A stretch of DNA of 64,000 nt from Paraphysomonas bandaiensis (Eukaryota > Protista > Chrysophyceae), in the NCBI GenBank assembly GCA_965644295.1, contig CBFFRP010000108.1:124001-188000 (forward strand), written 5' to 3'. Positions 1 to 39,669 of this stretch are shown here, in pieces (within the stretch, counting starts at the first letter, position 1; each line of letters starts with the position of its first letter). The notes under the pieces were generated by a model. That model was not told the DNA's origin, searched no databases, and saw only the letters and a list, made by a program, of their open reading frames with translations. The position numbers and the translations under genes are program-made.

Positions 1-3000
1 ATACTGACAGCGGCACCCGCATTTCCGAAGTTAGGACGCGAACGGCGTACTGCTAATTCCTTAATAACTTTTTTCCTCAAATCCCGGGATATTGAGAGCC
101 CGTGTTCTGTTATTAGTTTCACAACCACACGATCTAAATCCGCATTGTTGAAGTCCTCGAATCTAAAAGCATCCTCCAAGGCAAAGCGCCGAGTTAGACC
201 TGGATTTTGTCCCCGAAACATTTTTCGCATTTCTTTCTCGTAGCCAATCAGAACAACGGATATGTCCTCTCCTGGAGTACCTTGTACTAGCTCCGTAAGA
301 GTGTCCAGTGCATTGTGGCCGTAAGATGTGTTTGTCAGAGCATAAGCCTCGTCTATTATCAAAACCTTCCCTCGACATCTTTTAATCAGAGCGGCCGTGA
401 TCTTCTCAGCTTCTCCCACTGCCGAACCGATTAGGTCACTTGGCTGCTTCAACTCCACTGCACCGTCACTAAGCAACCCGATGCCTTTCAAAATGCGCCC
501 ATATAGCTTTGCAACGGTGGTTTTTCCGGTGCCTGGGTTGCCAAGGAAGACACGATTCAAAGACACTTCGTATGGGACCTCTCCTCTCAATTCGCGTTCA
601 TAATTGACCGCTGCAATGTTGATCAAGCTGTATATCGCTTTCTTTACACTTTCCAATCCGATCATTGCATCCAGTTCATCGATGGCCTGGCCAAGACTAG
701 GAGTATGTTCGCGAGTGGGAGGAGGGCCGAGAATATCGCTTATAGTGAGGGTCTGGGCATTGCGGTCTCGCGTCAATGCACTTCTATACGCCTTCTCAAA
801 CAGCAAACGCACTGCACCCGCATTCCCGAATGATTTATGTCCTCTCCCGCGAGAGATGCGGCGAGCTGCAACGGCGATTACACTGGGATCGGCGGGTGGC
901 CAGTTGTGGGTTGAGCACAGTTGCATTAGAATTTCAGCGACTTCGGGCTCTGTATAGTCCTCGAAGTTGAATATGTAGTTAAATCGACGATTGAAACCAT
1001 CATTGAAGTCAAAGAGCTTCGTCTCTATTTCATCCTTATAGCCCGCCAAAATTATAGTTAAGTCGGTACGACGTTCTTCAGTGACGTCAAGCAGCTGCAT
1101 TGCCACAGATTCTCCACTGACGTTCTTCTTAGGATCGAGTGCATACGCTTCATCAATGAATAGGGTGCCTCCTGTGGCCTTGTCAATCAACGCGCTGACA
1201 TCATCTGCACCCATTCTTGCCAATTTCTCGCCAGTGATAACTTCAAAAGAATCACTGCGTCGCACTCCGACTTCATGCAACATCTTACCCAGAATTTTGC
1301 CAACTGTGGTTTTACCTATATCGCGATAATCATAAAGGACATTAATATTATATTATTACAATATTGTTATAAAGTTATTACTGTATTAGGAAATAAAAAT
1401 AATATTGGGCAATACACATGAACATATAATACCTGTTCCCGGATTGCCTAATAGGGCAAAGTTAAACGTCTGAGGAACGCGCCGCTCAGCAGGTAGCGAT
1501 AACTCTGCGACAATGCTCATATAGATTTCAAGTGCTTTCTCTTTGACCGCTTTGAGGCCAACAAGTTGCATCATGTCATCCAATGCTGCTGACAGAGGTG
1601 ACCCCCTTTCCAGCTTCAGTTTTTCCCATTTATCTTGTGGAGTGTCGATCACGACAACAGCTTCTGGTGGAGCAATAAACGCTTGGTCCTGAGGGGTCTC
1701 CGCGCTGCTTAGCTCGTGTTCAGTCATGAAGCGTCTCGCGTGTGCCACATTATTGCAACGTCGTAGACAAGAAATCCTAAAGTTTTGCTCTGAATCAGAT
1801 CGGCACACCAGAGTTCGAGATATAACGAGAAAAAACACCGCATCAAGCGGACAGGACACCGTGCGCATTGTATCGTTTACATACTCTTCGATGAACTCTG
1901 CTGCATCCTGGTGATATATATCTACATGACTTGGTGCAGTATTGGCCAGAGCGAGATACAGAGAGACATAAGGCCAATTGGAAAGGACAGGTTTCTCAAA
2001 GATAGCAATTGCAACATCCACCTCTTTTCGAAGCACACTCATGGGCACCTCGCTATTAGCACCACAATACTTGGCTAGAATATCAAGCGCGTTTTGCACC
2101 TGCTTCTGGAGATGCTCTTCGTCGGGTAAGAATGGCCCTGCAGGGTGACCCTCGTGCCAATCGGAGCAACACTTCACAACCCTCTCGGCATCATCTTCGC
2201 CCCATCGCTGAGCACAGCTGTCCTTAAACTGCTGCTCTTCATTTTCTATTTGTGCAATCATCTCCAGGTCGCTTTCAGTCATAGGGAGCTCAAGATACTG
2301 ATAGCTAGTGATAGTCTTTTTTATCATGAGTGGAGTGTTGTAGGAGTTCGATCGCATCGCTGATAATAAATTATTTGCATTCGATATCTGCTTTATCAGG
2401 CGCACAGCAGCCTCCACATCGCATGTATCGGCCGCAAGCCCAGCTCGACGTGACTCATTTATAGCTTCTCGAAGTAAATCTTCCTGAGGGGGTCGGCATG
2501 ACAAAGCCTGTTTGAGTTGGTCCTTCGCCTGTCGATGACGCTCTTGCACATCTGATAATTTGGCAGCAGCAGAAGACAAAATCGGCGAACTCTCTCCATT
2601 CAGACCCAGAGCCTCAACCTCTTCGATTGCAGCAACGATCTCACGAATCCATGACTCAGTGCAGGTCCATTCCCTACACAAAGTATCTAATCGTCCTAGA
2701 GCTGCTTGCTGCGACTGCTCCGTCGCCGCCATAACACGAGCGTCCGCTTGCAAGAGCTGTCCCACCCCTCTTCCTCTCGACGGACCGCTTCCTCGCCCCC
2801 TTCCACCACGTCCTCTCCCTCGACCCTTCGTGAAACGGACGGAATCGTTCTTTTCCTTCTGCAAGTCTTGCAGAGTATGCTTTTCGAATTGTTTACGACT
2901 AAGACGAACTTTCATTCCTCGCCATTGCTTTTGAATACGAACAGCCGATTCGTTTTGAACTTTAAGGAAGTATTCCCTCTCGGCATTCTCTCGCTCCTCA

Positions 3001-6000
3001 ACTTTCTCATCGAGAGAATCCACTAGAAACCAAGGTGTGAGACGTGTTTTCAATGTATCGTCTGAATGGGCGATAGGCCGACATGTGTTGCTTGCGCCCT
3101 TAGTGAAATAGAATGTCCACTTCCACACTTTTTCTACTGCAAGATATTGAGTTTGTATGGATGCCCAACTCCGTAGTTTCTGCCGAAGGAATACATAGTG
3201 GGCTCCCTTGAATTGAAATGACGAATGTGGTCCATTTGATGTGGCTGTGGAGATATATTGTAGTGCTTTCAAGAGAGGCACTTGCATGTAAAGAGATGAC
3301 TCTGATCGAAAAGCTTTGACTAAGGACTTGTGCAACGGCTCGAAAGGTTTGAGCAGAAGCTCATATTTTACCAAATTCGACTCCAGATTGCGAGCATCGT
3401 CTGCAAGGTGATCATATTGCTTCTCCAAGTCCCGCAGTTGCTCATCTACCATATCTGGCCACATCTGCTTCCACTCAATGCCCTTATGCGCAAATAAATA
3501 GGCTTGTGTTGATATTTGTGTTTTCAGAAATTCCCGTAGTTGTTCCAGCTCTGTGACGGGAGTTGAGAGTAAAGCATACCTCTGTCCTTCGTCAGTTAAA
3601 TTGATATAAGCGCGAGATATAAAGTATTCCTCATCCTCGATCCCAGGATAAAGCTTCTGCAAAACGCATCGAATAGTCACGGAACTGTCATTCAATTCGA
3701 CCGCAGCGTCCACATACTCTTGAATAGGACGCAATGCGTTCACTAAACTTTGCAAGCTATCATAATCTAGTGAATGATATATCTGAAAGTAGTAAGATGT
3801 CTCAGTGTGAGAAGGTATTGATTTTAGTACCGCATCACCAAAGCGGCAAAACTTTTGGTAACTGGTCACATCTAATAAAATGGGTAAGTACGCCTTCCTG
3901 TCCTCAAACTCCATTGATAACATTGTCATGTCGATATCCTGAGCAGCTGTGACCCACTTGAAAGCTCTACTAACTGAGGTAGAGATTGTACTCATGTAGT
4001 CAAACCCGTTGCTCCACAGTTCTAAAGCCGCATTGAATCTCTCCGCGTGGTCAGTTAGACTCATTTCGTCCGGTTGCAAGGCATCCTGTAAGCCAACACA
4101 GTCCAGATCCACCAACTTGTCAAGGGGGCGCGTTTTGTATTCTTTAGTTAAAGGCGTAATCCCCACAGTGTTCGACATTTTCAAGAACTCATTATACGTA
4201 TCTAATAAATCTCGCAAAACAGATATCAGATAATTCTGAAAAAGCTCACTATCCGAGTTTTTAGTTGATAAAATCGACCAAACAGGCATAGATTCGTCGA
4301 GTAAAGGCTGGTTCGAGGAAATGCCACCCATTTTTATCCAGCGGTTGATACCCACCTTTACTCGAACCCACAATCGACGACTATAGATTCCATTTTCTGT
4401 TTTTATAGCATTCTCCATTAAATTTTCTATTGTAAGTTTCTTAGCCAGTGCCTCTGGAATGGGATTCGCGGACAACTCGACTGTGACCCAGTCGTAAAAT
4501 TCAATTAAATCAGGAATTACCCAGAAGCACTGCAACTTGTTACGCATTAGAATAAATGCCTTTGCAAGCGATATGGACCGGTCATGGGTCAGTTTGTCGT
4601 GAATCATCTTTATCAGTGGTGATACCAACGGCGGGTGTTCTTTGTGAAAATTAGTAAACCATTGCACGGAGTCCTGTCCAAATGCCTCGATTGCATTTTG
4701 CAGCCACGACCCCAGTATTTTATCTTCCTTTTCACAGGCAGCCACACACTCGGAAAGATGACTTATTGCTGAATCTGCTGTGCATAGTGGCATTTTGACA
4801 GTCACAAAGTATGCCAACTGAGCTGCCCACAGCAGTCTGTACTTAGGGTCGTCGATCAGCTCTAGTACTCCAATAACTCGATCCGATTCGTCTCCACTGA
4901 CCAGTATCGAGGTTTGGGCTCCCTGGAACATTGATATGCGATCGGAAATTCTCTGTACAATTAGCATTTGCACAGCGGATATTGCAATCGCGCGCTGAAT
5001 CGGGAAAAAATCTAGCGATGTCGATGTCATTATCTCTTGAACCAAAACAGCAAGAGTTTTTAAGTCATTTGTTTCGTGTATGTAGGTCAACCATTTCCAA
5101 GTAAAATGAAAGAATACATCCAACAAATTTATACGTTTCAGATCAGCACTGCATTGTAATCGCAGCCAATGCGGTGTATACACAAACTTCGCTTTCCCGA
5201 GAGTGCAATCTCCACCTTGCCTTTTCAGTGACTGCTCAAATAAGTCAATGATGTCGAATCTCCGTTGTTCTTTACCGAAATACTCAAACATTCGCACAAT
5301 TGTTGTTTCCTTACTTGAAAGTGTCTCCAGCATGCCATGTTTAGCTGCCCATGTACTACCGAAAAGAATTTTTTCCAAAATGGGCACTAGATTAAGAGGC
5401 ATATAATAAGATTGTGGCATAACAACGTCAAAGATAAATGTACAGTCATCTTCTGTTAGAGCGGTTGTGGAGCACCAGTAATCCAGCAATCGATAAATCA
5501 GCAGAGGTGATAACACAGCGATCGGGAAAATTTCATGTTCATCTTTCATTATCGATTTCCAAACTGCAGAGAGGGTTATTCTGTGATCCGATTCCAGCGA
5601 GCAGAGTCGACGGACGATGTATCGGAATTCATCCATGATAATAACCTCGTCACTTAACGAAGAATTTCTTGCTCTGAATCTAACAAGCATGGCAACTATT
5701 GTCATTACTCGAATCCGCTGTTTCTTATACTCCTGAGCACTGCTGGCCGCGTCGCTAAGCTTTGCCGCTGTGAAAGCTTTCTCCCAACGCTCAATACTAG
5801 ACATTGAATTTACCTCTTCGTCCTTAGCAAACAGCTGCATAATGTGATAATAATCATCGACGAGTTCCGTTGACAAACGAGAATGAACGTCTTCGTCGCC
5901 ATCCATAATAGACAACAAATGATCCCTAATATTATCGGCTATGGTGAGTTGAGCTAGGGGCTCAAAGAAAGTCGCTAGAGAAACGAGAAGACTGTGATGC

Positions 6001-9000
6001 CACTGAGCCACTGCATGCAGAGATGAGGGTTTAAACTTGGACATCGATATACCCTCAAAGGAAGAAAGCCACGCAACCAGAATGCGATGCTGCAGTTGTT
6101 CTTCACTCTGCTGCATCAAAGGGTATAGTTGGTGAACGAAATGCTGCAAATAACACTGCCATGTGTCATTAGGAATGTCACTGTCGAATAAGACATCTGC
6201 AGCAATGGTCGCAAGTGCATCACCGTCATCAGAAATTAAGCGGACTCTCTTCACAATCTCCAAAGTTATTTTTTCCCAAATCTCTTCGTCCTCGCTATCG
6301 GAATAAAGGGCTAGGACTTGGGAGGATGCTACGTCTACATACTTCGAAAGTTGTCGGAAGAACGGAAATACTGGCTTCGAAAGCGACAGGCCTTCTCTGA
6401 TAGAAATGTGGACCATCGCCAATGGAGCAGCAAGTTCTGAAAATGGAGGTATTGGAATCGACTTCAAACACTCTGCAAATATGTACACAGCGTTTACATT
6501 ATTCAGTGAAGAAGTGGCGTCGTATTGTGTGAAAAGTACGCTGGCATTGTAGTCTTCTAGCATTGCCATGATCATACGACTGAGATAGTTCGTAAACATA
6601 TTTCGCACTTCCAATGATATGTGTGACAGTGACCCTTGCAACTCACCAGTGGCAAGTTTATTGATTCTCTCTCGAATATGTTCTTGAAGCAAGGAGTAGT
6701 TGTCATCTGGTCCCGCCCACAAACTATTATATCTCGAAATTAGAATATCTTGAACCGTATTATCCTTCCCACTGCAGCCAATGAGTGACTGAAGTACCTT
6801 TGATAAACAGTGAATCCTTTTATCAAGGAGTCCACCCTCTGTAGCAACCCTATCGATGATCTCGTCGGGAACTTCAATAAAGCGGGCTAACACTTTCAAA
6901 ATATCAGGAACCCAGCTCTGCAAGACCGCTTTGAAATCCCAATTGCTTTGATATTGCTCAAATGTCATTTCCAGCCAAGTCACCACTTCAGTAGAATCAA
7001 CGTCATTAAGAAATGTGCTTTCCCAATCAGCACTGAACGTAGTGTCACAAAAATGATGAACTCTCAAGTCTGCCAAGGGCACATGAACTAAAAACAAAAT
7101 AGACTTCAACACCTTCGATTGAATAGCAGCGATTTCATCAACAGCATACCGAGCAAAGTTGACCTGGCTTACGGAAGTCTGTGCGCTATCAATAAGAATA
7201 AGCAAAACATTATTAGGATCGTTGATGTCGTAAAATGATTTTAAATCATTAGTAAACTGAGATTCACGGGAATATTGTGCGAATATCGCCAACCTTGTGC
7301 CTGTGGCACCCGCCAAATTTATTCCAGCACCGGTTTGAAGTGCAAGAATAGCAGCGGATGTGTGCGTAAACACTATATGCTTGCGGACAGAAGTTTCACG
7401 AACCACATAATCCAAAAGCTTAGCAAGACTAAAGTGCTCTTTCTGCTTGAGGTAAGAGTGTATGACTCCAGGAGGAATATTATCAGTGTGCCTGAATAGC
7501 TGCTCTGCCGCCACAACACGCACTAACTGTCTAACAACAGTAAAAAGAAGCATATGGGACAAGATGGCTTCCGCCGCCTTGGTTTCGTGTTCATTCGCTG
7601 GTCTGCTCAAGACTTCAATTATTCGTATTCGATCTCCCGATAGATTTGCCGCACATTGAGCCGCCCCTGTGTAACTCTTCAACTCTTGAGAAACCACAGT
7701 AGAAACGAAATCCTCGTCCTCCAGAAAATGAAACACAGCGTTAGCCACAACCTCAATATTGGTCCAAGACGACAGTATGAGAAGTACAGCAGATTCTATG
7801 GTTTGATGATTGGCAAGTCCATAAAAATTGCGTGGATGGATTAATTCAACAAACAAATGAATATGCTCGAAGAGCTTTGACTGTCGTAACACCATATTCA
7901 GCGCAGGAAGCTCGTGTAGCATGTTGCTATTGTGCAGATAAGAATGCAGCAGATCGGCTTGAGTTAAGCGATATTTTTCGAATCGATTCAGGAAGGGGGC
8001 GGGAGTCGTTTGGAGTTCGGCAAGCGTAATATGAACGATACAGAAAAAGCCTGATGCAACCTTGCATCGTCTTGAATCTGCGCCAACTGCGATATTCGTA
8101 TGATAAACGACCTCAGTGCAACCTTCACTCTTATCTTCAAATTTACGAAAATGCTGGTTAAACAAATCGTAAAAGCTCTCGTTGATAGCCTCAGTCTGCG
8201 ATAGCAGAACCACTTGACCTTTCTCAGCGGCCCATTTCACCTGACTGATGACATGGATCTGTCTTATGGAGCTGTCCTCAACAAAGCGACTTAGTTTTAG
8301 CGAAGAAATGTTGTTGCCTAATCGGTCGTACAGAATAGAAGACAATGCTCTTAGCACCGAGTCGTTCGATGTGGTATCGATAACCAGTATATAACGACCA
8401 GAGGGCGTAGTTGCTGCTTGTTGCTCTTTTAGTGCTGTTCGTATTAAATCGACGGGATTGCGGAGTGTTCGGGACGGAGCAGCCAGTCCGCGTCTCTGAT
8501 TCGGGGCAATAAAGGGCAGCAAGAAATATGTAATTAGCTCTTTCAATTTATTTGGTTCAACTCCATTCATATTACGCTCAAGCGCCTCTACAATTTTTTC
8601 AGTCGTAATTTGATGCCTGGAATCTGCTCTAGCTAATTCCCCTAGTTTCTTCATGAATCCAATGAAGTCGCGATTTCCCAGAAATTCTACAAAGTCCGCG
8701 GGCGGATGACTATCCTCTTCAAGCGCGTATCGACGTGATGTTTCACTCATGCAAGAATCGTAAGTCTCGCACAAGACATCCAAGAGGCCGCGCTGAGAGA
8801 AATCTTGAGATGATGGGTCGAGTTTCAACCCCACCTGCCTTCCACGACGGTACCCAGGAACGGTTGATATGATATTTTTCCTTTCGTTTTCAGAGCCAAG
8901 ACAGCCACGGGCAATGTTCATAAGCTCCTCATGATCTGGCTTTCCTCGCATTAGCAAAGCACATCGATTGCTCTTTGCGGCATCAAGTAGGTGATTCGAA

Positions 9001-12000
9001 ATAGCAACGAAACCTACCTCAGCTGAAACGTGCATATGAGATTCCAAATAGAAATGTAACACCTTAAGACTCTCTCTTTCCTCCTCCGGCAAACCAGCTT
9101 CATCCATAAACACAAAGCATCTAATATTTCCTCCGTCCCTATTCGCCTTGGTTTGTCTTTCGATGGCGCGGTCAAAAACTGCTTTGATCTCATGACTAGT
9201 GCTACTGCGGCTGCATTGATATCGGAATGGGATAAGAGTAGGCGCCGCACGGTAGAAAGGGCTCTTGGAATACTCGCCACGTGCATTCTCCGCAACAATG
9301 GTAACCGCCAGTGTTTTTGACGATCCAGGAGGTCCAACAATCATTAAGGGGACATGTGCAAGACAACAAACGACAACCATAAAAATATTCTCCTGCAAGC
9401 CTCTCGTCTTTGCTATACCCGGTTCCAACTCCGTATGATTCATGAGTGCACTCATACTTCGCTGCAAAATACCTTCGACATCCGCTTCATGTTGACCGCA
9501 AACATTCTTCAGCCGAGTGAGAAACTTTCTTCGGAAATCTTTGTCGACATCATTGCTATCGGTACCAAGACGCAAGTAATAGAGTACAGCAATAGACAAC
9601 AGCAGCGCCTTGTAGCATCGCCCACCATAAGTAAAATCGGAAAAAAACACTTGTTCTATTACCCCAGATGTTCGAAGAAAATAGGAGAAAAGCTTAAACA
9701 CACGGAGTACGTCACGCAATGAAACGACAGAACTCGCTCGAGCTGCGAGCTCTTCTTCGCTGATCGAATGACCCTGTTTGCTGTTCAGCTTACAGAGAGA
9801 AGATATGTGCTCTCTTGCGAAATCACGTATCATCTGCTGAGACACCTGAATGAGATTGGACATTAAGCGAATATTCGCATCAGGAACACCTTCACTTCGC
9901 ACGATAAAACGGAGTTTTTTGTCGATAAACTCGGCCTCTTGACTTACATTGAGAGAACCATAGACCCACGTCATTTGTTGTAGGGACTGCGGCAGTGGAT
10001 GAACTTGGTAGTGACCAATCGCCCACTCGTTGCCTAACTCTTGACGACGCTCTCCGGTGACTCCAATCTTACTGCGAGCAGGATTACAAGCAGCAATAAG
10101 CACGATGTTATCAGGCAAGGGATCGCCTTCTAGGCTGTGATCAATAAGCATTTCTTTGAAGAGACCCATGCAGCTGGAAGTGTTGACTTCATCAAAAAAA
10201 ATACATATTGTCGCTCGCCTGTGTATGTCGCTGTCCAGTAAGTCTGCCAATACTTTTAGCCGTCGAGCACGGGAAATTACATCTTTAACGCCGATGACTG
10301 GGTCGTTTGATATATCATCAGGTCCCAGCGCAGCGTGTACATCCACCGCGTGGAATGTCCAGTGCTCAGACGGATTATTTCTCCTCGCCATCTGAAGTTG
10401 ATTCCTTACAAACCAAAGTAGTAATTCGTAGCTAGCCGTAACAATGTCATCATGTTCTAAATCAATCAATGGGTCTAAACCTGGGTCCGCCTTGAGCTCA
10501 TCAATCAGTGTTTCTGATACGGTCGAAGAATTTCGTTGACACAAGCTTTTCGCAATTTTATCGGGGTGGTACCACACAGACATATCATCCGCGAGATCGC
10601 TACACTGATAATCATCCGCTAATTTCCGCAATGCTCTCAGTTCTCGAGTGTGTGCGTCATTCCCAATATCTTCTTCGGCTTCCTGCAGAATTGTTTGAAC
10701 GAACAGTGAAGGCACTCTGCTTACAGTGTTCTTGAGAAAGAATAACATCCGCGTAAGAGCAGTTTTGCTGACCCCGGTTTCACCCTCCATAATGCACGGC
10801 ACTCGACATTCAATTCTTTCGTTAATGCAAAGCATCTTCAGTACAAAGTCTAGAGTTAGTACGAATAGGTTATCCTCAATCGATGGCAATTTTCCAATGG
10901 CAAAATCGAATGGTTGGCCACTTGAAGAAATTTCTTTTTTGGCATTCTGTAACTTAACCCCAATCCCTATAGCCAGATAAGACTCAAGCACTCGAATGTC
11001 CTGTCGATTAAGGTCTTCGTCTGAGGGAACGTGCATTTTCAATGAACTCAAGAGATTCAATCTTCTCTGCCAACCGGAATCGGATGTAGTTGGAGTCGTC
11101 GCCAGTATACTCCATTTGTAGTCGTCCACGAGTTCACCATCAACATTTCGCATATCTCGTGAGTACACGAGTTGCTCATGATTGTAGGAATTCCAGTCCA
11201 CATGGAAGTTGTCCGCTAGTGCGTGCTCTACCTCCTCCAGCATTATTTTCATGGTTGTACTTCCGAAAGCAGCCATATCTTGGTTCTTATTGAACTTCTC
11301 CGAGGCTGCTAAGATTCCACACCGACGATAGAGATACTTTATCCAATACATTTGTTTGAGGCGAGACCAACCACTATTGGCAGTGTTCAGCCTCATGTAC
11401 TTCTGTAGAAACTTTATGCAGTCGTTGTCCGAAATGTTTGCACCCTTCTTCTCAATCTTTTGGCTCACAGTCAGTCGCTCACCTACCTCAACCCAAGCTT
11501 GAACCAGAGAGGCTGTCCCGTTGTCAGCATGAATAATACTGTCTCCTAATTTCTCATCACGAATACATGTAGATATAATCGACTGTTTCATTCTATAATC
11601 CAGTGCTACAGTGATAAATAATACCCGAATGCTTTGTCCGCTCGAGCATCGCAGTAGATCTGCAATTGTCGGTGCCAGATTAGAGTCACCAGTTGCACCA
11701 TCCGTTAAAGCCACAATCCACTTTGTGCCGGTATTATCTGGACACTGCTGTAGTTGTTCAATCGCTCTCTGGATGGCTCCCCACATTGCTGTGCCTCCCC
11801 CACTGTGGACACCTACCAGCGTATTACGGACTCGATCCTCGTGGGCGCCGTCCCATGTGTGGAGTGGAATGTTTCGTGAAATTGTGTTGTCAAACACAAT
11901 CAATCCCACTTTATCCTCCCGGCTTATTCGCGTTGCAAAAATATCATTCGATAAGCATCTTTTACATGTTTCTAAAGGGCCTCCTGTCATACTTCCTGAC

Positions 12001-15000
12001 TTATCCAGCACAAACACAACATTTTTGGACGAAGATTCAGCACCATAAAGGTCGTCAATACTGCCATCCTCATAAGCCTTAAGATATTTACAAACATGTC
12101 TGGCTTCAGAACCGACATCAAAGGGGCATGTGTTAGCGTCAACAATATCAGCGACAGCCATTAATATTGGTATATCGGCCGCTAACGAGAAACATCCTTC
12201 TCGATATGCCAAAGTTTTTCTTTCACATCCTTTCTCTAGGTGTCCTGTATAATCGGGTAGCTCAACACAAATTTGCAGATCACATCCTGGTGGGACAACA
12301 AACACCGCACCAGTGAGTGGATCTTCCACGAAACGTAGCAAAAGAAGGCTAATAAAAAAGCAGCTAATTTTTTCCATTAAAAATAAGAGGTCTGCTTCCT
12401 CACTGCACTTATATTTACCCAGATTTATTTGAAAAGCAATCGCAACGCTTCTACCTCCTGCGTCGTGTATGATATTAAGCATTCTTTCAATGGCGCGAGA
12501 GAATGAAAATGCCTCATTTATACTAACTACTCCAGTTTTGCAGTGATTCAGTGATTTAAGATGCTTTTGCATTTGATAGGTTTTGCCACAACCTGTTGAC
12601 CCTGTGAAACATGTTACAAAATTCTTAATGCAACCGCTATCGTAAACCCATTGCTGCAGTTTTTCCCTTACAATTACGTCGTGATCAATTTCCACAGCAA
12701 GCTCATCCTCATTTTGGACTGGAATCCAAGAAATTGATTGCAATATACTGGGACCAGTTTCAACACAATGTAGATTGCATGCGGCCACCTGACCTGTATG
12801 ACTGCTGGTGGTAGGGTCTCTTTGTTCAAGGAACACACTCAAAACAATATGCTGCAGAGTTGGTACTAGCCGATCGACTTGCAGTATGGTGAAGCATCCA
12901 TCTGGAAAATGCGATGCTCGTTCAAGGAATGCGGACAGTTCATGCGCAGTGGTAGAGTCCTGACACCATAGAATCTCAAACGGCCGTGGGGGTCGCAACG
13001 AATATATCACTGTCAGTAGACGTAGTAGCGATAAATGGGAAGGGTGAGAACTATACCGTTGAGGACCACTACGATTTGACAATGAAACATTGGCAAGGAC
13101 TGATAAGACAATGGAATGTCCACTCTGTTGCATTCGGCGCATCACCTGACACAAAAATTGAGATACTCGTTCCGGCCACTCAAGGATATGGGTGTGAATA
13201 TTCTTTGCATTGCAACTTTTGATATTGGTATTATTTTCTATGACCTCTTTTACTACTTTACGTAAAGCATCAAAGCTGTTCGCAGATCGAGGGAAAATAT
13301 CGCAGATAAGTAAGGCCAGTTCGGTTGCCTTGTTTGCGCTGATGAACACGTCCATTTTCTGGGCGATGGATGTGGTCAATAATCGCAAAATTCGGTTGTT
13401 CTTATATGTGGCCTCTAAAATATGTTTCCAATTTGAACGCTGTTCATGCAATTTACTTAAATCATCTTCGTGAACAAAATGAGCAGATGCTAGAAGCGAC
13501 AGAGTGCAGTCATCCCAAGTCTGTTCGGATTGCCCAACCACATGGGCGACAAGAGGTGACGATGTCCACATCCGATGACCCAGTGTTCTCAGCTCACACA
13601 TATCGACCAACAGCCGCCGATACTGCTGCAGTAGAGACAAGTAGCCCTCTACGCGACTGGACTCTACTTTCGCTTCGTGCTGGACGAACCCCAATCGCTG
13701 CTCAAAATCGCGTACCTCATTTTCGTTGAAGGATACTGAATGCTGCTTCTTCGGGTCTTTATACGTCAGCCTCAACTGCACGCGCTCCAGATCGAACCAA
13801 TATATACAACATGCCGATATGCACAAGTACTGTCCTATTACTGCGTCGAGCGCACTGAGACCTTTTAGAAACAAGCTACTCAAAAACTCTATATTTGCTT
13901 CCGCAGTGCGTAGTTGTGAAAAGGGGTTTGATGCTAGGGGACGCCTAGCTTGTTCCATGATACTGGTTGATGTACAGAGATTTCGCATTAACTCTATGAA
14001 TGGCAGCTGATGGTTCGCCACAAGAATTGAAACCCATTGTGCGACTGGAATAAAGTTATCAAGCACTCTGTAGTCCTCACCACTCAGTTGAGAGAGAAAT
14101 TCCTCTACCTTGTTGTTGAACACTGCACTGTAGCCTGTCCCCTTCGCTGAAATAAATTCTGGCTGTGTTTTTATAAACTCCCACACTTTCTCTGCGGCGG
14201 CTAAATTTTGAAAGAAGCTAAGCATGCCGAGTGCAATTCCCTGTGAAGCATCGTCTACACCAGGACACAAAAGATTTCTTAGCTTTGCCAATACTGCAGT
14301 ACACTCGCTGATCGTCCAGCTCCCTATCATATCTTGATTGCATAAATCTGTCGCGATTTTCTTCAACTCGGCATAGTCCGTATCCAGACATGCATCGCCA
14401 TCATGCTGTGCACAAGCGAATCCGTATCGTTCCAGTATGCTCAGTTTCGTTGCTCTACCTACATGCGACGATTCTCCGATTGCAAGTTCTTTCACCGGGT
14501 CAACGACTGCAATTAGATCTAAAATCGTAGGCAAGCTTGTTCTTATTCCACTATCAATGACCCCATTCGTAAAATAATCTGCAAGTAGCTGAAGCTCTGC
14601 GGTTGGTGATCGAGCCTCTTTTTTCAAAATATCACCAATCATCATGGTTTCGCTAAAGCTGAGCTCGGGAGGACGTAGTTGTAAAAATCTTTCTAACAGA
14701 CCATGTACTACCAAAAGAGACTCCACAAAGGCAGAAATCGTGTTCCACTGTTTTTCGTTGCTCTGCTTCACTCGTTGATCGCTAAGTAAATTAATGAATA
14801 GCACAGACTTGGAAGATGCCAGCTGACCGGCATTCACGTAGAAGTGTTCGAAAAATGAACGGGACTTATGATCGATAGCAATAACAAATCTGCGAATTTT
14901 AGTCGCACGGTCAGTCATTGTGCCTGGAGACTCCCGGGTTGATTCGCCTCTAGATGCTCGGAAAAAGGTAGCCACTTCCATTTCATGCATAACAACGGGC

Positions 15001-17528
15001 AGAAAATACGCTAGTGACTCCAAGAGAGGACGCTGACTCTGAATATAGTCAAAATCAAGACGCCACTGAGATAGATGTCTATTTAATAGTGAACTCCAAT
15101 GCACATACTGTTGAGGGGAAGACAGCCTTTTCTCGAGCATACTCACAATCGCAACATTGTCATTACAAAGCACTTCGAGATCTGTGCAGCTTGAATTAAG
15201 AATCGATTCTTCTGTAAATAACACATCGTTGCACTTTCGACGAAGTGGTTCAACATAGGAGTCGATGAAAGCAGTCGTTATTTCGGTTTTCCTGTTGATG
15301 TTCTCTATTTTTTTCACCACATCTAGCCAGGCCGACAGCATGCAATTCGAATGATCTAGAAACTTTGATGCTCGCAGCTGCGCTGTTAAAGAGGACATGC
15401 TATCAAAGTGAGCTAGAAGTTTCATTCGTTTTGCACATCGGATTCCGAATCGTACCCAGAAATATTGGTTGAAGGCCCCTTCAACGGCTACGCTATTAAA
15501 CAATCCATTCTTCGGGCTATCGAGCCGTACTTCTCCAAGCAGTTTTACTACAATTAATTCTACGACATGATTCAGTATTTCAGTGGAGTTGATATAACGC
15601 ATTTCGCGGCACATGATACTCACGTCATCGGCCAGAATTACTCTTGAATCAAGAAACAACCGGAGAAGGTCGAGGAACAAAGTGCTGTGTGCCGGCAATA
15701 GGGGGTGGTTGCAAGAGACAAGGGTGAGAAACCTAGTCCACTGTCGCTGATGCGTAGTCTCAGAGTTGAGAAATTTATGGAGAATAGCTCGAAGTTCAGT
15801 AGCTATTCGATCAGGTGTCATAAGCTGCGAATCAAAGGAAACCGCCACTTCAAAGGCATCTAGATAAGCTTTCAACTCCGCTTTGTCAATAGGCTTCTCC
15901 TGAAGATACCGCAGTAACGCCGTTGGGTCAGAATTGCCTAGAGTTCTCAGAAACTGAAACCAAGCTAGTACATCAACTATGTACATCCGCCCTTGTAGCA
16001 CGTGTGCTGTAGCGACCTCTAAGAATGCATCAAGATAACTTGCCAATTTCCCCTTCCTGCATATCTCATAGAGTTCCATGACGTCTTTCAACTGTCGCCG
16101 ATTGCCAATGAAGCGACAAAACTGCTGACGGAGGGCGTCTTGCAAGCAAGGCAGAGGGCCCGTAGTCGTAATGTTGTCGTAGCAGAGTACTAAAAGCTCT
16201 TCTAAGTCAAGAAGAGATCTTGTGGCAGGTGCACCGTGCTTCACAATGGCTTCAATATCCACTGATATTATGGCTGCAGGATTCCACTCTTTCGCTCGTT
16301 TTACCGCTTGATTCAGGTTCCGAATAAAGACTTGCACGGGGCCCGCTCCCATCTTGGAGAATGCGTCCTTGACCATCATGACTATTCCAGAGTGACAATC
16401 CACTTTCCTATCCAAGAGCGCATGGAATTGGACTAAAGGGACCAATTCATGGATGGTCTCCACGAGTTGTCCATCCAGTCTTGCTTGTACCTGTTGGTGT
16501 ATAAACGGCATGACGTAATCCCAGATACGTGGATGGTTGTGTACGAGAGCCAATCCCGTTGCATTCCATTGGTATAAAACTACAAAAAAATTTACGGTTG
16601 ATATTAAAAACTCGTTGAAGTAGTCTACCCAATGATGGAAATGCCTTTGTAAATATAGTGCAATCATTATCATGAGAGGAAAGTTAGATTCATTTCGTTG
16701 ATCTCTCAACAGTCGACATACGCTGATAGCATCCAGTCTCCAAGAGCTTAGGTTATCCAATAGATTAAGCACGTCATTTGCACTTTCATCAATAGTTCGA
16801 GACATCAGTTCAAGCAGTTGTCGCAATTGGCTGGATAAAGGCGGTAAATGCCGAGCCGATACTTTAGCAGAGATTCCCATGCAGGTGCAGTTTCTCCTTG
16901 CCAAGATAATTTGATTTCCAACGCTATAGGTTACTAGAATGACAGAAATAGTGACTGGTACGACCATCACGGCGTTCTCGTTGAGAAGCTGCACCCAGTC
17001 TTCAGTGGAGTACGACCACCACAATTTTGTAAAAGAATGTGTTTTACTCGGCAATTGAATCACAACACTTTTAGCGTGCTGATGCTTTTCACATGACCTT
17101 GCAACTTGTAATAAGTTTTGAATAAAAGTTGTGATGTCGGGACTATTGAAAACAGAAGTTTCCATTTGACAGGGAATAAATGCAATTGCGTTCTCAGCGT
17201 TTTTGGCGTTCCCATCAAAATCTTTAACCATCCAATTTTTCTGTCTTGATGTTTTTAAAGGACCTGCTTTCACAACACGGTCGCCAGGCAAACGACCGCT
17301 ACGATACTCTGTATTCGATGCTGACCCATAAGAAAATGTTATGGCATCGAGGCCTTCTTCGTTAAACATCGAGCCACATTTCTTCTCTCCAAATACATCA
17401 ATTTTTATAGGTATGGCGGGTAATTTTAACCTAGAAGGTGTCCTACAGAGTTCATTTAAGGTAAATGGAGACAACGTATAATAATTCTGTTGCATTGCAC
17501 CTGTTTTCGCTTGGATCAGTACCAACAT
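1..17528 (-). CDS. Giant RNF213/mysterin-like AAA+ ATPase with an inserted vWA domain, IQ and RGG motifs and C-terminal tandem CbbX/SpoVK-type AAA domains. Exons 17528-1433 and 1315-<1; at least 5,800 aa; 3' end lies outside the window.
   Basis: The 5380-aa ORF has RNF213-like motifs in the expected order: LTLDFVLKMLCI..CIMEGETGVSKT, FFDEVNT, IAACNP, YQVHPLPQSL, VSLRDV, ENIFMVVVC..PLMIVGPPGSSKT, YQCS..ST, MDEAGL, FVAISNHLLDAAKSNR, ESFYDLFNQ, PAPFLNRFEK. Splicing a phase-1 GT-AG intron (1432-1316) completes GNPGTG|KTT. The frame then stays open to base 1 through FIDEAY and a second FLGNPGTGKTT/IIDEAY/NPGL.RRF/NFGNAG unit. Confidence 0.9.
1316..1432 (-). other. 117-nt spliceosomal intron splitting the Walker A motif of the first CbbX-type AAA domain
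   Basis: ACAG|GTATT donor and TATAG|GTAAA acceptor on the minus strand; AT-rich interior; splicing restores GNPGTGKT in frame. Confidence 0.88.
11480..12027 (-). other. von Willebrand factor A domain with an intact MIDAS motif, within the giant AAA protein
   Basis: VVFVLDKSGSM (DxSxS), DKVGLIVFD, GGGTAMWGAI (MIDAS Thr), IVALTDG (MIDAS Asp). Confidence 0.88.
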
Positions 17529-33546: not shown

Positions 33547-35854
33547 TTATATACAATATCACCGGCACTCTTACAAGGATATTAGTGGTTAGCTTGCATC
33601 AATGGCTGCTTTCAATAGTCTGGATGAACTGGGAATGGACGAGCAGTGGAAGCAATATGTCGTTCACTGCAAGAAGTCCCCTTATGATGTATATATCGGA
33701 AGAGCCTCTCCAGAAATGCCGAAAGGTTCAAATCCACAGTGGGGTAACCCATTTCAAATGCGAAAACAATCAGAGAGGGAGCACAATAGAGTGTGTAGAG
33801 AGTTTAGTGAGTGGATACTGACGCAACCTCAACTTATACAGAAAGCGAGAGCAGAACTCCGAGGAAAAATACTTGCGTGCTGGTGTTCGCCAAAGAGATG
33901 TCATGGCCATGTACTCTCTGAAATAGCTAATTGTAGCGACGAGTGTTTTGAGGTCAAATTTGGCCCTGTTTTGCATGTGGATACCATACAAAACGTTCAA
34001 GTTGAACCAAACGCATCTAAAAATGCGGAATCAATTCAGTCTATCCGACAAAAATTGTATAAACTAGACAGTGATGCAACACTAACTGCTCATCAACGAA
34101 AACATGAACGTCGAAACCTCAATAAGAAACTTGACCGACTGATATCACGTGAAAAGAGTGGTGGAGGTGAAACTTGTGTCCAGGCGTCTGTTGTTGTGGA
34201 TATCGGTATTAATATTACTAGCAAGCAGCTACGGGGCAAATGGCGCGATATATTTCTACGAGCGGAAGAGGCAAAGGTTGTAGCTGTTCTTCTTACTGGA
34301 ACTTCAATACGATGTGTAGAAGAGTCTATAGAAATAGCCCGGCAGTGGGCCCAGGAGAAGGGCACAAAAAATGTACACCATCCCAAGTTGGCGGCATACT
34401 GTACTGCCGGCATCCATCCTCACGATGCGAAATCATTCACTGAATCTACTACGCAACGCCTGCGAGAGCTTGCTGCAGACCCTTTGGTGGTTGCTATAGG
34501 AGAGTGTGGTTTAGACTTCAATCGCAACTTTAGCTCCAGAGAAGAACAGATTAGGGCATTCGAGGCTCAGGTGGAGCTCGCCTGTGAGTTAGGCATGCCA
34601 ATGTTTGTGCATGAGAGAGAGGCACATGAGGCTTTACTAGAAGTTCTTGATAGGTAACAACTTAATGTTCACATTTTGAGAAGATTTTGTTATAGAACTA
34701 AGTAGAGAATTAATAATGTAGATTAGTGTGATGTCTTTTGCGTGTTTAGAAGAGCTTGTTTGCATGTTATGCGACAGGAAGTTATGTGTATATGTTTTAG
34801 GTTTTCCGGAAGATTGCCACCACTGGTGGTTCATTGCTTCACTGGTTCTCACGAGGAAGCAATCGCTTATATAGAGCGTGGATTTTTTATTGGGTTTACA
34901 GGCACGCTTTGCAAGCACGAGCGAGGTGCGGTGCTTAGAGAAATACTCCGAAGCGGCACAGTGCCTCTAGAGCGAATCATGATAGAGACGGATGCACCAT
35001 GGATGGGGTTCGTGAAAGGAAGAAGGGAGAGTGAACCCATGGATGTCAATGGAGTTGCGGATAAGCTGGCTGAGTGCTTAGAAGTTGACGTAGAAAGAGT
35101 TCGCAATACCACCACGGCGACTGCATTTAATTTTTTCAGATTGAGTTAGCATAATATGTGGCTAATGATTTAGTACAATAGACTGCTATTGTTTTGATAT
35201 GAGTTGCATGATAGCTTAATGTATTAGGGTTGTGACAACTGGAAGTAGCTTTGGAGATTAGACGATTTTTTTACAGGATATTTTTTGTTAAAACTGACTA
35301 AGTCGTTTGCAAGTGTTAGATCTCAAGTCACAGCTGAGGTGATATAGTCCAATAGACTTCAATAGCTGGTTCTATCTGTTTTCAACTAAAATTTACGCAA
35401 ACCAACAAGCACATTGAGATGTTTGGCCCTCGATGCTGTTTGTAGTGATTAAGCTTTTAGCAAGATTACTATACAAATTTAATATACAGTTTTACTATAA
35501 CATAGCCTGGAATGTTATGGCCAATATAAGATGCTCTTCAGTACAGGTTGGGCATCTAATATCCAACAAATTCGTCTTCCTCAAATTCGCCTTCAGTGAC
35601 TGTGCCATCTGACATCGTGTATCTACATAGCTGTATCAACAATAGCTTTCACGAGTCAAATTACCTACCGTCCCTTTCCATGCATCATACCGCCTTTCCA
35701 CTCACCAACATACTCAATACCATCACACCAGTTTTTAGTTCCATGTCCTTCGTGCAATCCAGCTACCCATTCGCCATCATATACAACTCCATCGCTATAT
35801 GTCATGATACCTCTCCCCTCTCTCTCCCCAGAAGGCGACATCTGACCAACGTAT
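33547..35854 (+). repeat. Left arm of a ~2.3-kb inverted segmental duplication
   Basis: Reverse-complement match to 37299-39724 across the 5' flank, both exons, the intron, the 3' flank and the 3' half of the MORN gene. Confidence 0.93.
33602..35149 (+). CDS. tatD: DUF4326-TatD nuclease fusion protein, copy 1. Exons 33602-34653 and 34801-35149.
   Basis: N-terminal VVHCKK.PYDVYIGR..WGNPF..ELRGKILACWC.PKRCHGHVL (DUF4326). C-terminal DIGIN, TAGIHPHDA, AIGECGLDFNRNFS, FVHEREAH, VVHCFTG, ETDAP (E. coli-type TatD). GT-AG intron 34654-34800. Confidence 0.9.
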
Positions 35855-37997: not shown

Positions 37998-39669
37998 CTA
38001 ACTCAATCTGAAAAAATTAAATGCAGTCGCCGTGGTGGTACTGCGAACTGTTTCTACGTCAACTTCTAAGCACTCAGCCAGCTTATCCGCAACTCCATTG
38101 ACATCCATGGGTTCACTCTCCCTTCTTCCTTTCACGAACCCCATCCATGGTGCATCCGTCTCTATCATGATTCGCTCTAGAGGCACTGTGCCGCTTCGGA
38201 GTATTTCTCTAAGCACCGCACCTCGCTCGTGCTTGCAAAGCGTGCCTGTAAACCCAATAAAAAATCCACGCTCTATATAAGCGATTGCTTCCTCGTGAGA
38301 ACCAGTGAAGCAATGAACCACCAGTGGTGGCAATCTTCCGGAAAACCTAAAACATATACACATAACTTCCTGTCGCATAACATTCAAACAAGCAAACGAT
38401 ATCACACTAATCTACATTATTAATTCTCTACTTAGTTCTATAACAAAATCTTCTCAAAATGTGAACATTAAGTTGTTACCTATCAAGAACTTCTAGTAAA
38501 GCCTCATGTGCCTCTCTCTCATGCACAAACATTGGCATGCCTAACTCACAGGCGAGCTCCACCTGAGCCTCGAATGCCCTAATCTGTTCTTCACTGGAGC
38601 TAAAGTTGCGATTGAAGTCTAAACCACACTCTCCTATAGCAACCACCAAAGGGTCTGCAGCAAGCTCTCGCAGGCGTTGCGTAGTGGATTCAGTGAATGA
38701 TTTCGCATCGTGAGGATGGATGCCGGCAGTACAGTATGCCGCCAACTTGGGATGGCGTACATTTTTTGTGCCCTTCTCCTGGGCCCACTGTCGGGCTATT
38801 CGTATAGACCCTTCTACACATCGTATTGAAGTTCCAGTAAGAAGAACAGCTACAACCTTTGCCTCTTCCGCTCGTAGAAATATATCGCGCCATTTGCCCC
38901 GTAGCTGCTTGCTAGTAATATTAATACCGATATCCACAACTCCGCATGCCTCTTTTGGCCCAAAACCTGAACCTAACCCAGAAATCTCACTCGTGTCATT
39001 AATGCTGGGAAATACTTTGGTGTCTTGATGTACTGTTTTAGTTACCTCTTGGCTAGTCGCGTCTGAGTCTTGCGTCAAACAATTAGCTTCATTATTACTC
39101 TGACCTCCACCACTCTTTTCACGTGATATCAGTCGTTCAAGTTTCTTGTTGAGGTGTCGGCGTCGATTCTTTCGTTGCTGAGCAGTTAGTGTTGCATCAC
39201 TGTCTAGTTCATACAATTTTTGTCGGATGGACTGAATTGATTCCGCATTTTTAGATGCGTTTGGTTCAACTTGAACGTTTTGTACGGTATCCACATGCAA
39301 AATAGGGCCAAATTTGACCTCAAAACACTCGTCGCTACAATTAGCTATTTCAGAGAGTACATGGCCATGACATCTCTTTGGCGAACACCAGCACGCAAGT
39401 ATTTTTCCTCGGAGTTCTGCTCTCGCTTTCTGTATAAGTTGAGGTTGTGTCAGTATCCACTCACTAAACTCTCTACACACTCTATTGTGCTCCCTCTCTG
39501 ATTGTTTTCGCATTTGAAATGGGTTACCCCACTGTGGATTTGAACCTTTCGGCATTCCTGCAGAGGCTCTTCCGATATATACATCATAAGGGGACTTCTT
39601 GCAGTGAACGACATATTGCTTCCACTGCTCGTCCATTCCCAGTTCATCCAGACTATTGAAAGCAGCCAT
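37998..39669 (-). CDS. tatD: DUF4326-TatD nuclease fusion protein, copy 2, with a longer linker. Exons 39669-38480 and 38346-37998.
   Basis: Same motifs as copy 1; exon-1 ORF is 46 aa longer; GT-AG intron 38479-38347. Confidence 0.9.

Follow-up and report, generated by a model that had tools for sequence, protein, structure and literature searches.

The window analysed here is a stretch of 64,000 nt (C108:124001-188000, C108 being contig CBFFRP010000108.1) from the 62.5 Mb, 669-contig assembly GCA_965644295.1 of the chrysophyte Paraphysomonas bandaiensis. At its left end lies most of a minus-strand gene for a giant ATPase of ~6,312 amino acids (aa), in which a ring of AAA units related to RNF213 is followed, at the C-terminus, by a cassette of three CbbX-type AAA units and a small terminal knuckle. 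Animal RNF213 is an immune protein and an atypical E3 ubiquitin ligase. It is almost certain that the locus is a single genuine two-exon gene and that its product belongs, within the RNF213 superfamily, to a subfamily conserved in stramenopiles and haptophytes. We tentatively propose, at somewhat less than even odds, that the protein is an ATP-gated machine whose output is mechanical remodelling. Taken as a whole, the gene, the subfamily and this mechanism form the explanation that we favour, with a probability of about 0.5.

A stop codon stands in frame immediately 5' of the ATG at 17528, and tblastn searches with the longer N-termini of homologues P0002 and P0011 found no upstream exon 5' of that position. 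Read without splicing, the open reading frame (ORF) at 1386-17528 on the minus strand encodes 5,380 aa and has its stop codon at 1386-1388. The proposed intron has a GC content of 21%, against 44% in exon 1; its AG at 1317-1316 precedes GT-AAA-ACC, so that splicing rebuilds a P-loop of GNPGTG joined to KTTVG in phase 1. Exon 2 continues beyond window base 1, the left edge, and the left flank, once fetched, added 1,524 nt up to a TAA at C108:122473-122475. The complete exon encodes 946 aa and the whole protein ~6,312 aa (5,365 + 1 + 946). Homologues cross the exon joint gap-free, for example between residues 5825 and 5827 of P0002. Feature coordinates are collected in Table 1. Residue numbers are those of exon 1 up to the CbbX-type cassette, and all searches were made with single exons or parts of them.

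The central ring is related to RNF213. When aa 1301-2800 and aa 2601-4100 were compared by phmmer with the full set of PDB chains, the only matches were human and mouse RNF213 (E 7e-31 and 1.5e-33 for the two segments), and chains of dynein and midasin were absent even at E up to 1. A midasin or dynein identity for the core was rejected on these grounds. The second and third core Walker A motifs align residue for residue with those of RNF213 AAA3 and AAA4, and the Walker A and Walker B motifs of both active ring units are kept in 40 or more relatives. Further towards the C-terminus, hhalign of the family alignment against the C-terminal halves of canonical RNF213-clade proteins gave 94% probability (E 1e-7) over aa ~3299-3856, and no similarity past aa ~3856. 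An AlphaFold2 model of aa 3201-4300, built with 14 homologues, had a predicted local distance difference test score (pLDDT) of 79.5. Its top eight Foldseek matches were all RNF213 (E 1.4e-9 to 1e-7, probability 1.0, ~1,200 aligned columns), followed by SAMD9 at E 4e-3; the TM-scores against RNF213, 0.30-0.33, are low, which a multi-domain model would lead one to expect. A further alpha/beta AAA-like unit is predicted within the same model, and fold comparison of model residues 1-317 gave generic AAA and dynein AAA5/6 likeness (Z 8.5). Family profiles of aa 3201-4300 and aa 4301-5365 matched no RNF213 chain and nothing meaningful in the PDB, and no fold match was found for a model of aa 4301-5365 (pLDDT 69). 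RNF213 homology covers the two active ring units and reaches approximately aa 3860.

Ahead of the two active units lies a first P-loop unit that matches Pfam AAA_7, the dynein motor region (E 1e-9), and has no canonical Walker B motif. A 21-sequence profile of aa 1300-1830 gave weak ORC5/AAA+ matches, among which RNF213 did not appear. The N-terminal arm had no Pfam match, and aa 1-1800 matched no PDB chain by sequence search. After the first core P-loop and before the second, the ring carries a VWA domain with an intact MIDAS site (DKSGS at aa 1842-1846, T1913 and D1943). The DxS[GES]S and TDG/SDG elements of this site are kept in ~25 relatives, throughout the VWA clade described below, and a gap at the same place in sponge relatives marks the domain as a clean insertion.

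No RING or RZ finger was found in either exon by Pfam searches, Cys/His density or regular-expression scans, and the E3 shell/core and C-terminal domain scaffold was not detected by profiles, fold or hhalign. The Pfam RZ model PF20173 does find RZ fingers elsewhere in the same genome, at C186:24843-24968(-) and C219:178131-178324(+), scoring 49.6 and ~30 bits, and the absence of RZ from the ~6,312-aa protein is therefore real. Each of these fingers lies ~4.2-4.4 kb downstream of a more distant RNF213-like AAA core on the same strand, a spacing that fits the canonical RNF213 layout. From spacing and strand we infer that finger and core form one gene at each of the two loci. The organism thus probably has RZ-type RNF213 paralogues beside the RZ-less ~6,312-aa protein. 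A third distant RNF213-like core, at C298:635923-638316(+), shows 29-35% identity, with stops or introns within the match and no RZ detected.

After a body of 5,365 aa, as long as human RNF213, the CbbX-type cassette is appended. Its best PDB matches were CbbX (3syk, E 8e-30; 3zuh, E 1.8e-26) and EccA1 (E 5.5e-26), values that, like those of the core, lie far outside chance. The Pfam AAA and AAA_lid_6 models also matched, and Walker A, Walker B and AAA_lid_6 are present in all three units. Across 11 proteins, each of the three unit positions keeps its own signature, indicating that the units are not recent duplicates; among the same proteins, the aromatic pore loop G-S-[YF]-[VL]-G-Q-T occurs in unit 3 only. 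Together with the three P-loops of the RNF213-like core, the cassette brings the total to six. Ahead of it, an IQ-like motif and an RGG box, partly kept in the family consensus, were noted in a low-confidence linker.

In the last ~160 aa of exon 2, a small helical domain is followed by a charged coiled coil and then by the terminal motif C-P-M-G-Y-T-W-H-R-E-G-N-G-W-R-C-A-G-G-S-H-R-V-N-D-F. The corresponding family pattern, C-x2-G-[YF]-x-W...G-[WY]-x-C-x-G-G-x-H, lies no more than ~20 aa from the C-terminus. The tail is not covered by any Pfam model, and an ESM Atlas look-up gave no usable match. A profile of the tail matched 1,400 cluster representatives at E <=1e-3 (547 at E <=1e-10) among 1.84 billion, and in 119 of the 126 hits listed the knuckle was <=20 residues from the C-terminus. 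Among the carriers are a chrysophyte, a malawimonad and a chytrid fungus, and the N-terminal partners are undefined, ankyrin, MIB-SH3/PDZ or SF1-helicase regions. Three metagenomic proteins, P0050, P0058 and P0179, consist mostly of tandem knuckles (16, 8 and 4 matched stretches, respectively) with no other Pfam domain, from which it follows that the knuckle is an independent, repeatable mini-domain.

An initial annotation of the window, made from the sequence letters, had anticipated much of this layout. The single polypeptide of at least 5,800 aa, the frame still open at base 1 and the splice at 1433/1315 that would rebuild GNPGTGKT are all upheld, the splice by its GT..AG borders, its phase and the colinear homologues. 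The three core P-loops lie where they had been placed (near ~12590, ~10770 and ~9320), the core is RNF213-like rather than midasin- or dynein-like, the lack of RING and RZ reported for the visible part extends to both exons, and the C-terminus is of CbbX/SpoVK type as described. The five Walker A-type P-loops that it counted were confirmed, and five as a total was wrong, a sixth lying in the part of exon 2 outside the window; likewise, the cassette has three CbbX-type units in place of the two described, the third being left of the window. The suggestion that a second AAA motor takes the place of the E3 module needs changing, as the ~1,400-aa helical region (aa ~3860-5290) sits there instead.

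A search with the core identified 49 giant relatives. Ten of them (P0002, P0003, P0005, P0006, P0007, P0009, P0012, P0013, P0014 and P0015) are colinear over the exon joint, and eight of the ten run through three CbbX-type units to the knuckle, P0005 and P0014 being truncated. At least eight further database proteins therefore align straight over the splice with the same architecture, which makes the gene neither a chimera nor unique. One of the colinear proteins, P0015 of Prymnesium parvum, is 6,534 aa long and is named 'hypothetical' or 'VWFA domain-containing'. The nearest relative is a partial protein labelled Ectocarpus fasciculatus, with a core identity of 65% by BLASTP and 72% in the tree alignment. 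Across stramenopiles and a haptophyte, the orthologues are colinear at 45-65% identity, and the gene type is at most two-copy in the P. bandaiensis genome.

A quick maximum-likelihood tree of the AAA3-AAA4 region, with a midpoint root only, separated an RZ-bearing clade containing mollusc R213A-like and Mesostigma proteins from a second major clade. The latter unites the SAM-ended Oscarella (sponge) relatives with a Diplonema protein and a VWA clade of stramenopiles and the haptophyte. In this tree the ~6,312-aa protein was placed in the second clade, outside the RZ-bearing one, with a branch support of 100, and the cassette-bearing proteins fell within a 20-row group with 99% support. Relatives that lack the cassette end differently, in a SAM domain in the sponge proteins and in a WWE domain in P0004, which indicates that C-terminal modules have been swapped within the clade. 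P0004 is ~43% identical over 3,400 aa, its WWE terminus standing in place of the CbbX cassette; WWE domains bind poly-ADP-ribose.

This distribution bears on a further proposal of the initial annotation. The architecture, called chimeric there, is not a one-off chimera and belongs to a conserved subfamily of stramenopiles and a haptophyte. The sequences are already public as 'hypothetical' proteins; a literature search for work that connects RNF213 to CbbX modules yielded no paper. By titles and abstracts, the literature on RNF213 and algae contained nothing on algal RNF213-like proteins, and the only match for RNF213 with ZNFX1 and fungi looks unrelated. The architecture, conserved in many algae, is apparently unstudied.

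A search of the genome found a sole other copy of the cassette, at C362:123945-127083(-). Upstream ORFs on the same strand encode a ZNFX1 domain (PF25396), both halves of a helicase (AAA_11 and AAA_12) and ankyrin repeats. At the end of the predicted gene, three CbbX-type units lead through a helical linker and a charged coiled coil to a terminal knuckle. The two cassettes share 30-45% identity. The statement, in the initial annotation, that a CbbX module lies C-terminal to the helicase in ZNFX1-like proteins is thus confirmed in the same genome. In animals, RNF213 and ZNFX1 have the RZ finger in common (bioRxiv 10.1101/2025.09.05.674436), and the cassette common to the RNF213-like ring and the ZNFX1-type helicase mirrors that sharing. 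It is tempting to speculate that the cassette is an ancient eukaryotic output module that replaces RZ in many protists and some fungi, and that it would form a ubiquitin-independent mechanical arm of ancestral cell-autonomous surveillance, beside RZ-type RNF213 paralogues; we consider this broad extension improbable.

The genes surrounding the locus encode a PhyH dioxygenase, an ALMT/FUSC-type transporter, a cytochrome b5-desaturase and two DUF4326-TatD fusions. The two fusion ORFs are convergent and lie ~3.8 kb apart. Composition is uniform along the window, with no sign of a viral or foreign island.

Table 1. Features of the ~6,312-aa gene, of its neighbourhood and of the RZ-associated cores elsewhere in the genome. 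Positions are those of the window unless a contig is named.
Feature	Position	Strand	Remarks
Exon 1	1433..17528	-	ATG at 17528; 5,365 full codons plus one base
Intron, phase 1, GT..AG	1316..1432	-	117 nt; splits first CbbX-type Walker A between GNPGTG and KT
Exon 2, part in window	1..1315	-	437 of 946 aa
N-terminal arm, aa 1 to ~1480	13089..17528	-	No recognisable domain; kept only in near relatives
First P-loop AAA unit, aa ~1600-1830	12039..12731	-	Walker A GSTGCGKT at 12579-12602
VWA domain, aa 1836-1973	11610..12023	-	Pfam VWA E 4e-12; between first and second core P-loops
AAA3-AAA4-homologous core, aa 2218-3195	7944..10877	-	phmmer against PDB: RNF213 only
Walker A GETGVSKT, aa 2249-2256	10761-10784	-	Walker B FFDE ~aa 2445, 10182-10208
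Walker A GPPGSSKT, aa 2732-2739	9312-9335	-	Walker B FMDE ~aa 2808, 9093-9119
Distal ring/hinge, aa ~3299-3856	5961..7634	-	RNF213-like by profile and fold
Family-specific helical region, aa ~3857-5290 (~1,400 aa)	1659..5960	-	Occupies place of RNF213 E3 module and C-terminal domain
IQ-like motif AVRIQKQW, aa 4862-4869	2922-2945	-	Pfam IQ E 0.002, under cut-off
RGG box (G-R repeats), aa 4902-4913	2790-2825	-	In helical region
CbbX-type unit 1, from aa 5297	714..1640	-	Lead-in PQDKWEKLK, intron-split Walker A, Walker B LFIDEA, AAA_lid_6
CbbX-type unit 2	1..700	-	Walker A GNPGTGKT ~520-542; Walker B VLIIDEA; cut by window edge
CbbX-type unit 3 and tail knuckle	C108:122476-124000 (outside window)	-	Pore loop GSFVGQT
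DUF4326 + TatD-type DNase fusion	33602-34657	+	Pfam E 1e-21 to 1e-29
DUF4326 + TatD-type DNase fusion	38476-39669	-	Pfam E 1e-21 to 1e-29
RNF213-like core with RZ downstream	C186:29210-31157	-	Genome search
RNF213-like core with RZ downstream	C219:171731-174005	+	Genome search

The mechanism that we propose starts from the ring, in which one P-loop unit probably only binds nucleotide and two units have intact Walker A and B motifs. Such a ring would act as an ATP-gated conformational switch, as in RNF213, whose output module is turned on once the AAA core has bound ATP (PMC12075652; bioRxiv 10.1101/2025.09.05.674436). The MIDAS-intact VWA domain may capture an acidic residue of a protein ligand via a bound metal ion. 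Integrin I-domains and the MIDAS domain of midasin both bind an acidic residue of their ligand through a metal ion. The output would be mechanical remodelling by the three non-equivalent CbbX-type units and not ubiquitin transfer, because the protein has neither a RING nor an RZ finger nor a recognisable E3 scaffold; unit 3 alone would offer the aromatic pore loop with which CbbX pulls on a substrate tail. The terminal Cys/Cys/His(/Asp) knuckle could be a small metal-binding docking or assembly element.

Several points weigh against this mechanism. The real activity could lie instead in the helical region (~1,400 aa) or the N-terminal arm (1,480 aa). Position is the one ground for equating the first P-loop unit with RNF213 AAA2, and the remodelling output is an analogy drawn from CbbX. 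Metal binding by the knuckle is putative, with just three invariant Cys/His positions. The support as a whole consists of sequence comparisons and predicted structures.

The role that the machine serves is a separate matter, and one possibility compatible with the proposed mechanism is cell-autonomous defence. In that role the ring and VWA domain would serve to detect or hold a structure of pathogen origin, with the cassette as an effector arm that works without ubiquitin. The homologue RNF213 is an immune protein, the cassette also ends a ZNFX1-type helicase, much as animal RNF213 and ZNFX1 have RZ in common (bioRxiv 10.1101/2025.09.05.674436), and near relatives exchange the C-terminal module for WWE or SAM, a modularity that is common among immune proteins. 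However, the low copy number and the colinear, 45-65% identical orthologues are unlike a fast-evolving arms-race family, and the neighbours are ordinary metabolic genes. A defensive role is a minority possibility on this evidence.

The same conservative, low-copy, colinear evolution would suit a housekeeping remodeller of the midasin/Rea1 kind, which strips or rearranges a factor of a large assembly and to which the CbbX units would add unfoldase power. An AAA ring with an intact MIDAS matches the logic of midasin, and the RGG box and IQ-like motif hint at ribonucleoprotein or calmodulin contacts. Set against this are the lack of sequence kinship to midasin, the PDB matches being to RNF213 only, and a distribution that does not fit a universal eukaryotic function: the searches made turned up this architecture in stramenopiles and a haptophyte only. 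We regard this role, too, as possible with the odds against it.

It is quite unlikely that the protein is a cryptic E3 ligase in which the knuckle, C-P-x-G-[YF]-x-W ... C-x-G-G-x-H, forms a shortened RZ-like transthiolation site. The motif superficially resembles the RZ pattern of P0041, C-x-x-G-H ... C-x-x-C-G-x-x-I-G-G-x-x-H, and it stands at the extreme C-terminus and, like RZ in animals, is common to RNF213-like and ZNFX1-like proteins. However, the Pfam RZ model left the tail unmatched at E up to 1 while detecting RZ in two paralogues, and the invariant residues of the knuckle are just two Cys and one His. In addition, some proteins that have no other known domain carry as many as 16 matched knuckle stretches in tandem, and no E3 scaffold is detectable upstream of the knuckle. 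The weakest alternative, an artefact in the form of an assembly chimera or of two genes (an RNF213-like gene ending at the 1386 stop and a separate CbbX gene), can appeal to the in-frame stop met 15 codons past the donor without splicing and to a splice read from sequence alone, but is extremely improbable given the perfect in-phase P-loop left by intron removal, the 351 kb contig of uniform composition and at least 10 independent proteins of other organisms that are colinear over the joint, 8 of which reach the same tail; the chimera was rejected on the colinearity of the homologues.

The explanation that we favour, an RNF213-family gene whose product may work as an ATP-gated remodeller, has implications beyond this organism. 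In animals, RZ is shared by two proteins, RNF213 and ZNFX1, both of which are now read as nucleotide-driven engines of an atypical E3 module. Here, homologues of these two engines in one genome share an altogether different C-terminal module, alongside probable RZ-type RNF213 paralogues, which offers a natural comparison for the role of the giant ring when ubiquitin chemistry is not attached. The tail module, outside Pfam, is widespread, with carriers among stramenopiles as well as in a haptophyte, a malawimonad and a chytrid. Should the protein be defensive, RNF213-type immunity would extend to ecologically weighty algae; if it is not, the RNF213 ring would be a general-purpose scaffold.

Among known systems, RNF213 (mysterin) is the closest to the body of the protein. 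The two share the AAA3-AAA4 core with its Walker A and B motifs, the distal ring/hinge, a long N-terminal arm and a similar body length (5,365 aa ahead of the cassette here). Unlike RNF213, the ~6,312-aa protein has no RING, RZ or detectable E3 shell and C-terminal domain, carries the VWA/MIDAS insert, the three CbbX-type units and the knuckle, and belongs to a separate deep clade in the quick, midpoint-rooted tree. Midasin/Rea1 likewise combines an AAA ring made of one giant chain with a VWA domain of the MIDAS type. That domain is C-terminal in midasin, whereas here it is internal, between ring units, and the two proteins have no detectable sequence kinship.

The cassette, for its part, resembles CbbX, EccA1 and SpoVK in its lead-in helix, GxPGTGKT Walker A, hhhhDEA Walker B and AAA_lid_6, and in the pore loop of unit 3. 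It differs from them as three fused, non-equivalent units that end a giant protein, units 1 and 2 being without the aromatic pore loop, and it has no link to Rubisco or type VII secretion (CbbX itself is the red-type Rubisco activase). The ZNFX1-type helicase at C362:123945-133000 has the identical cassette order, knuckle included; its N-terminal engine is a superfamily 1 (SF1) ZNFX1-type helicase with ankyrin repeats, whereas that of the ~6,312-aa protein is an RNF213-like ring.

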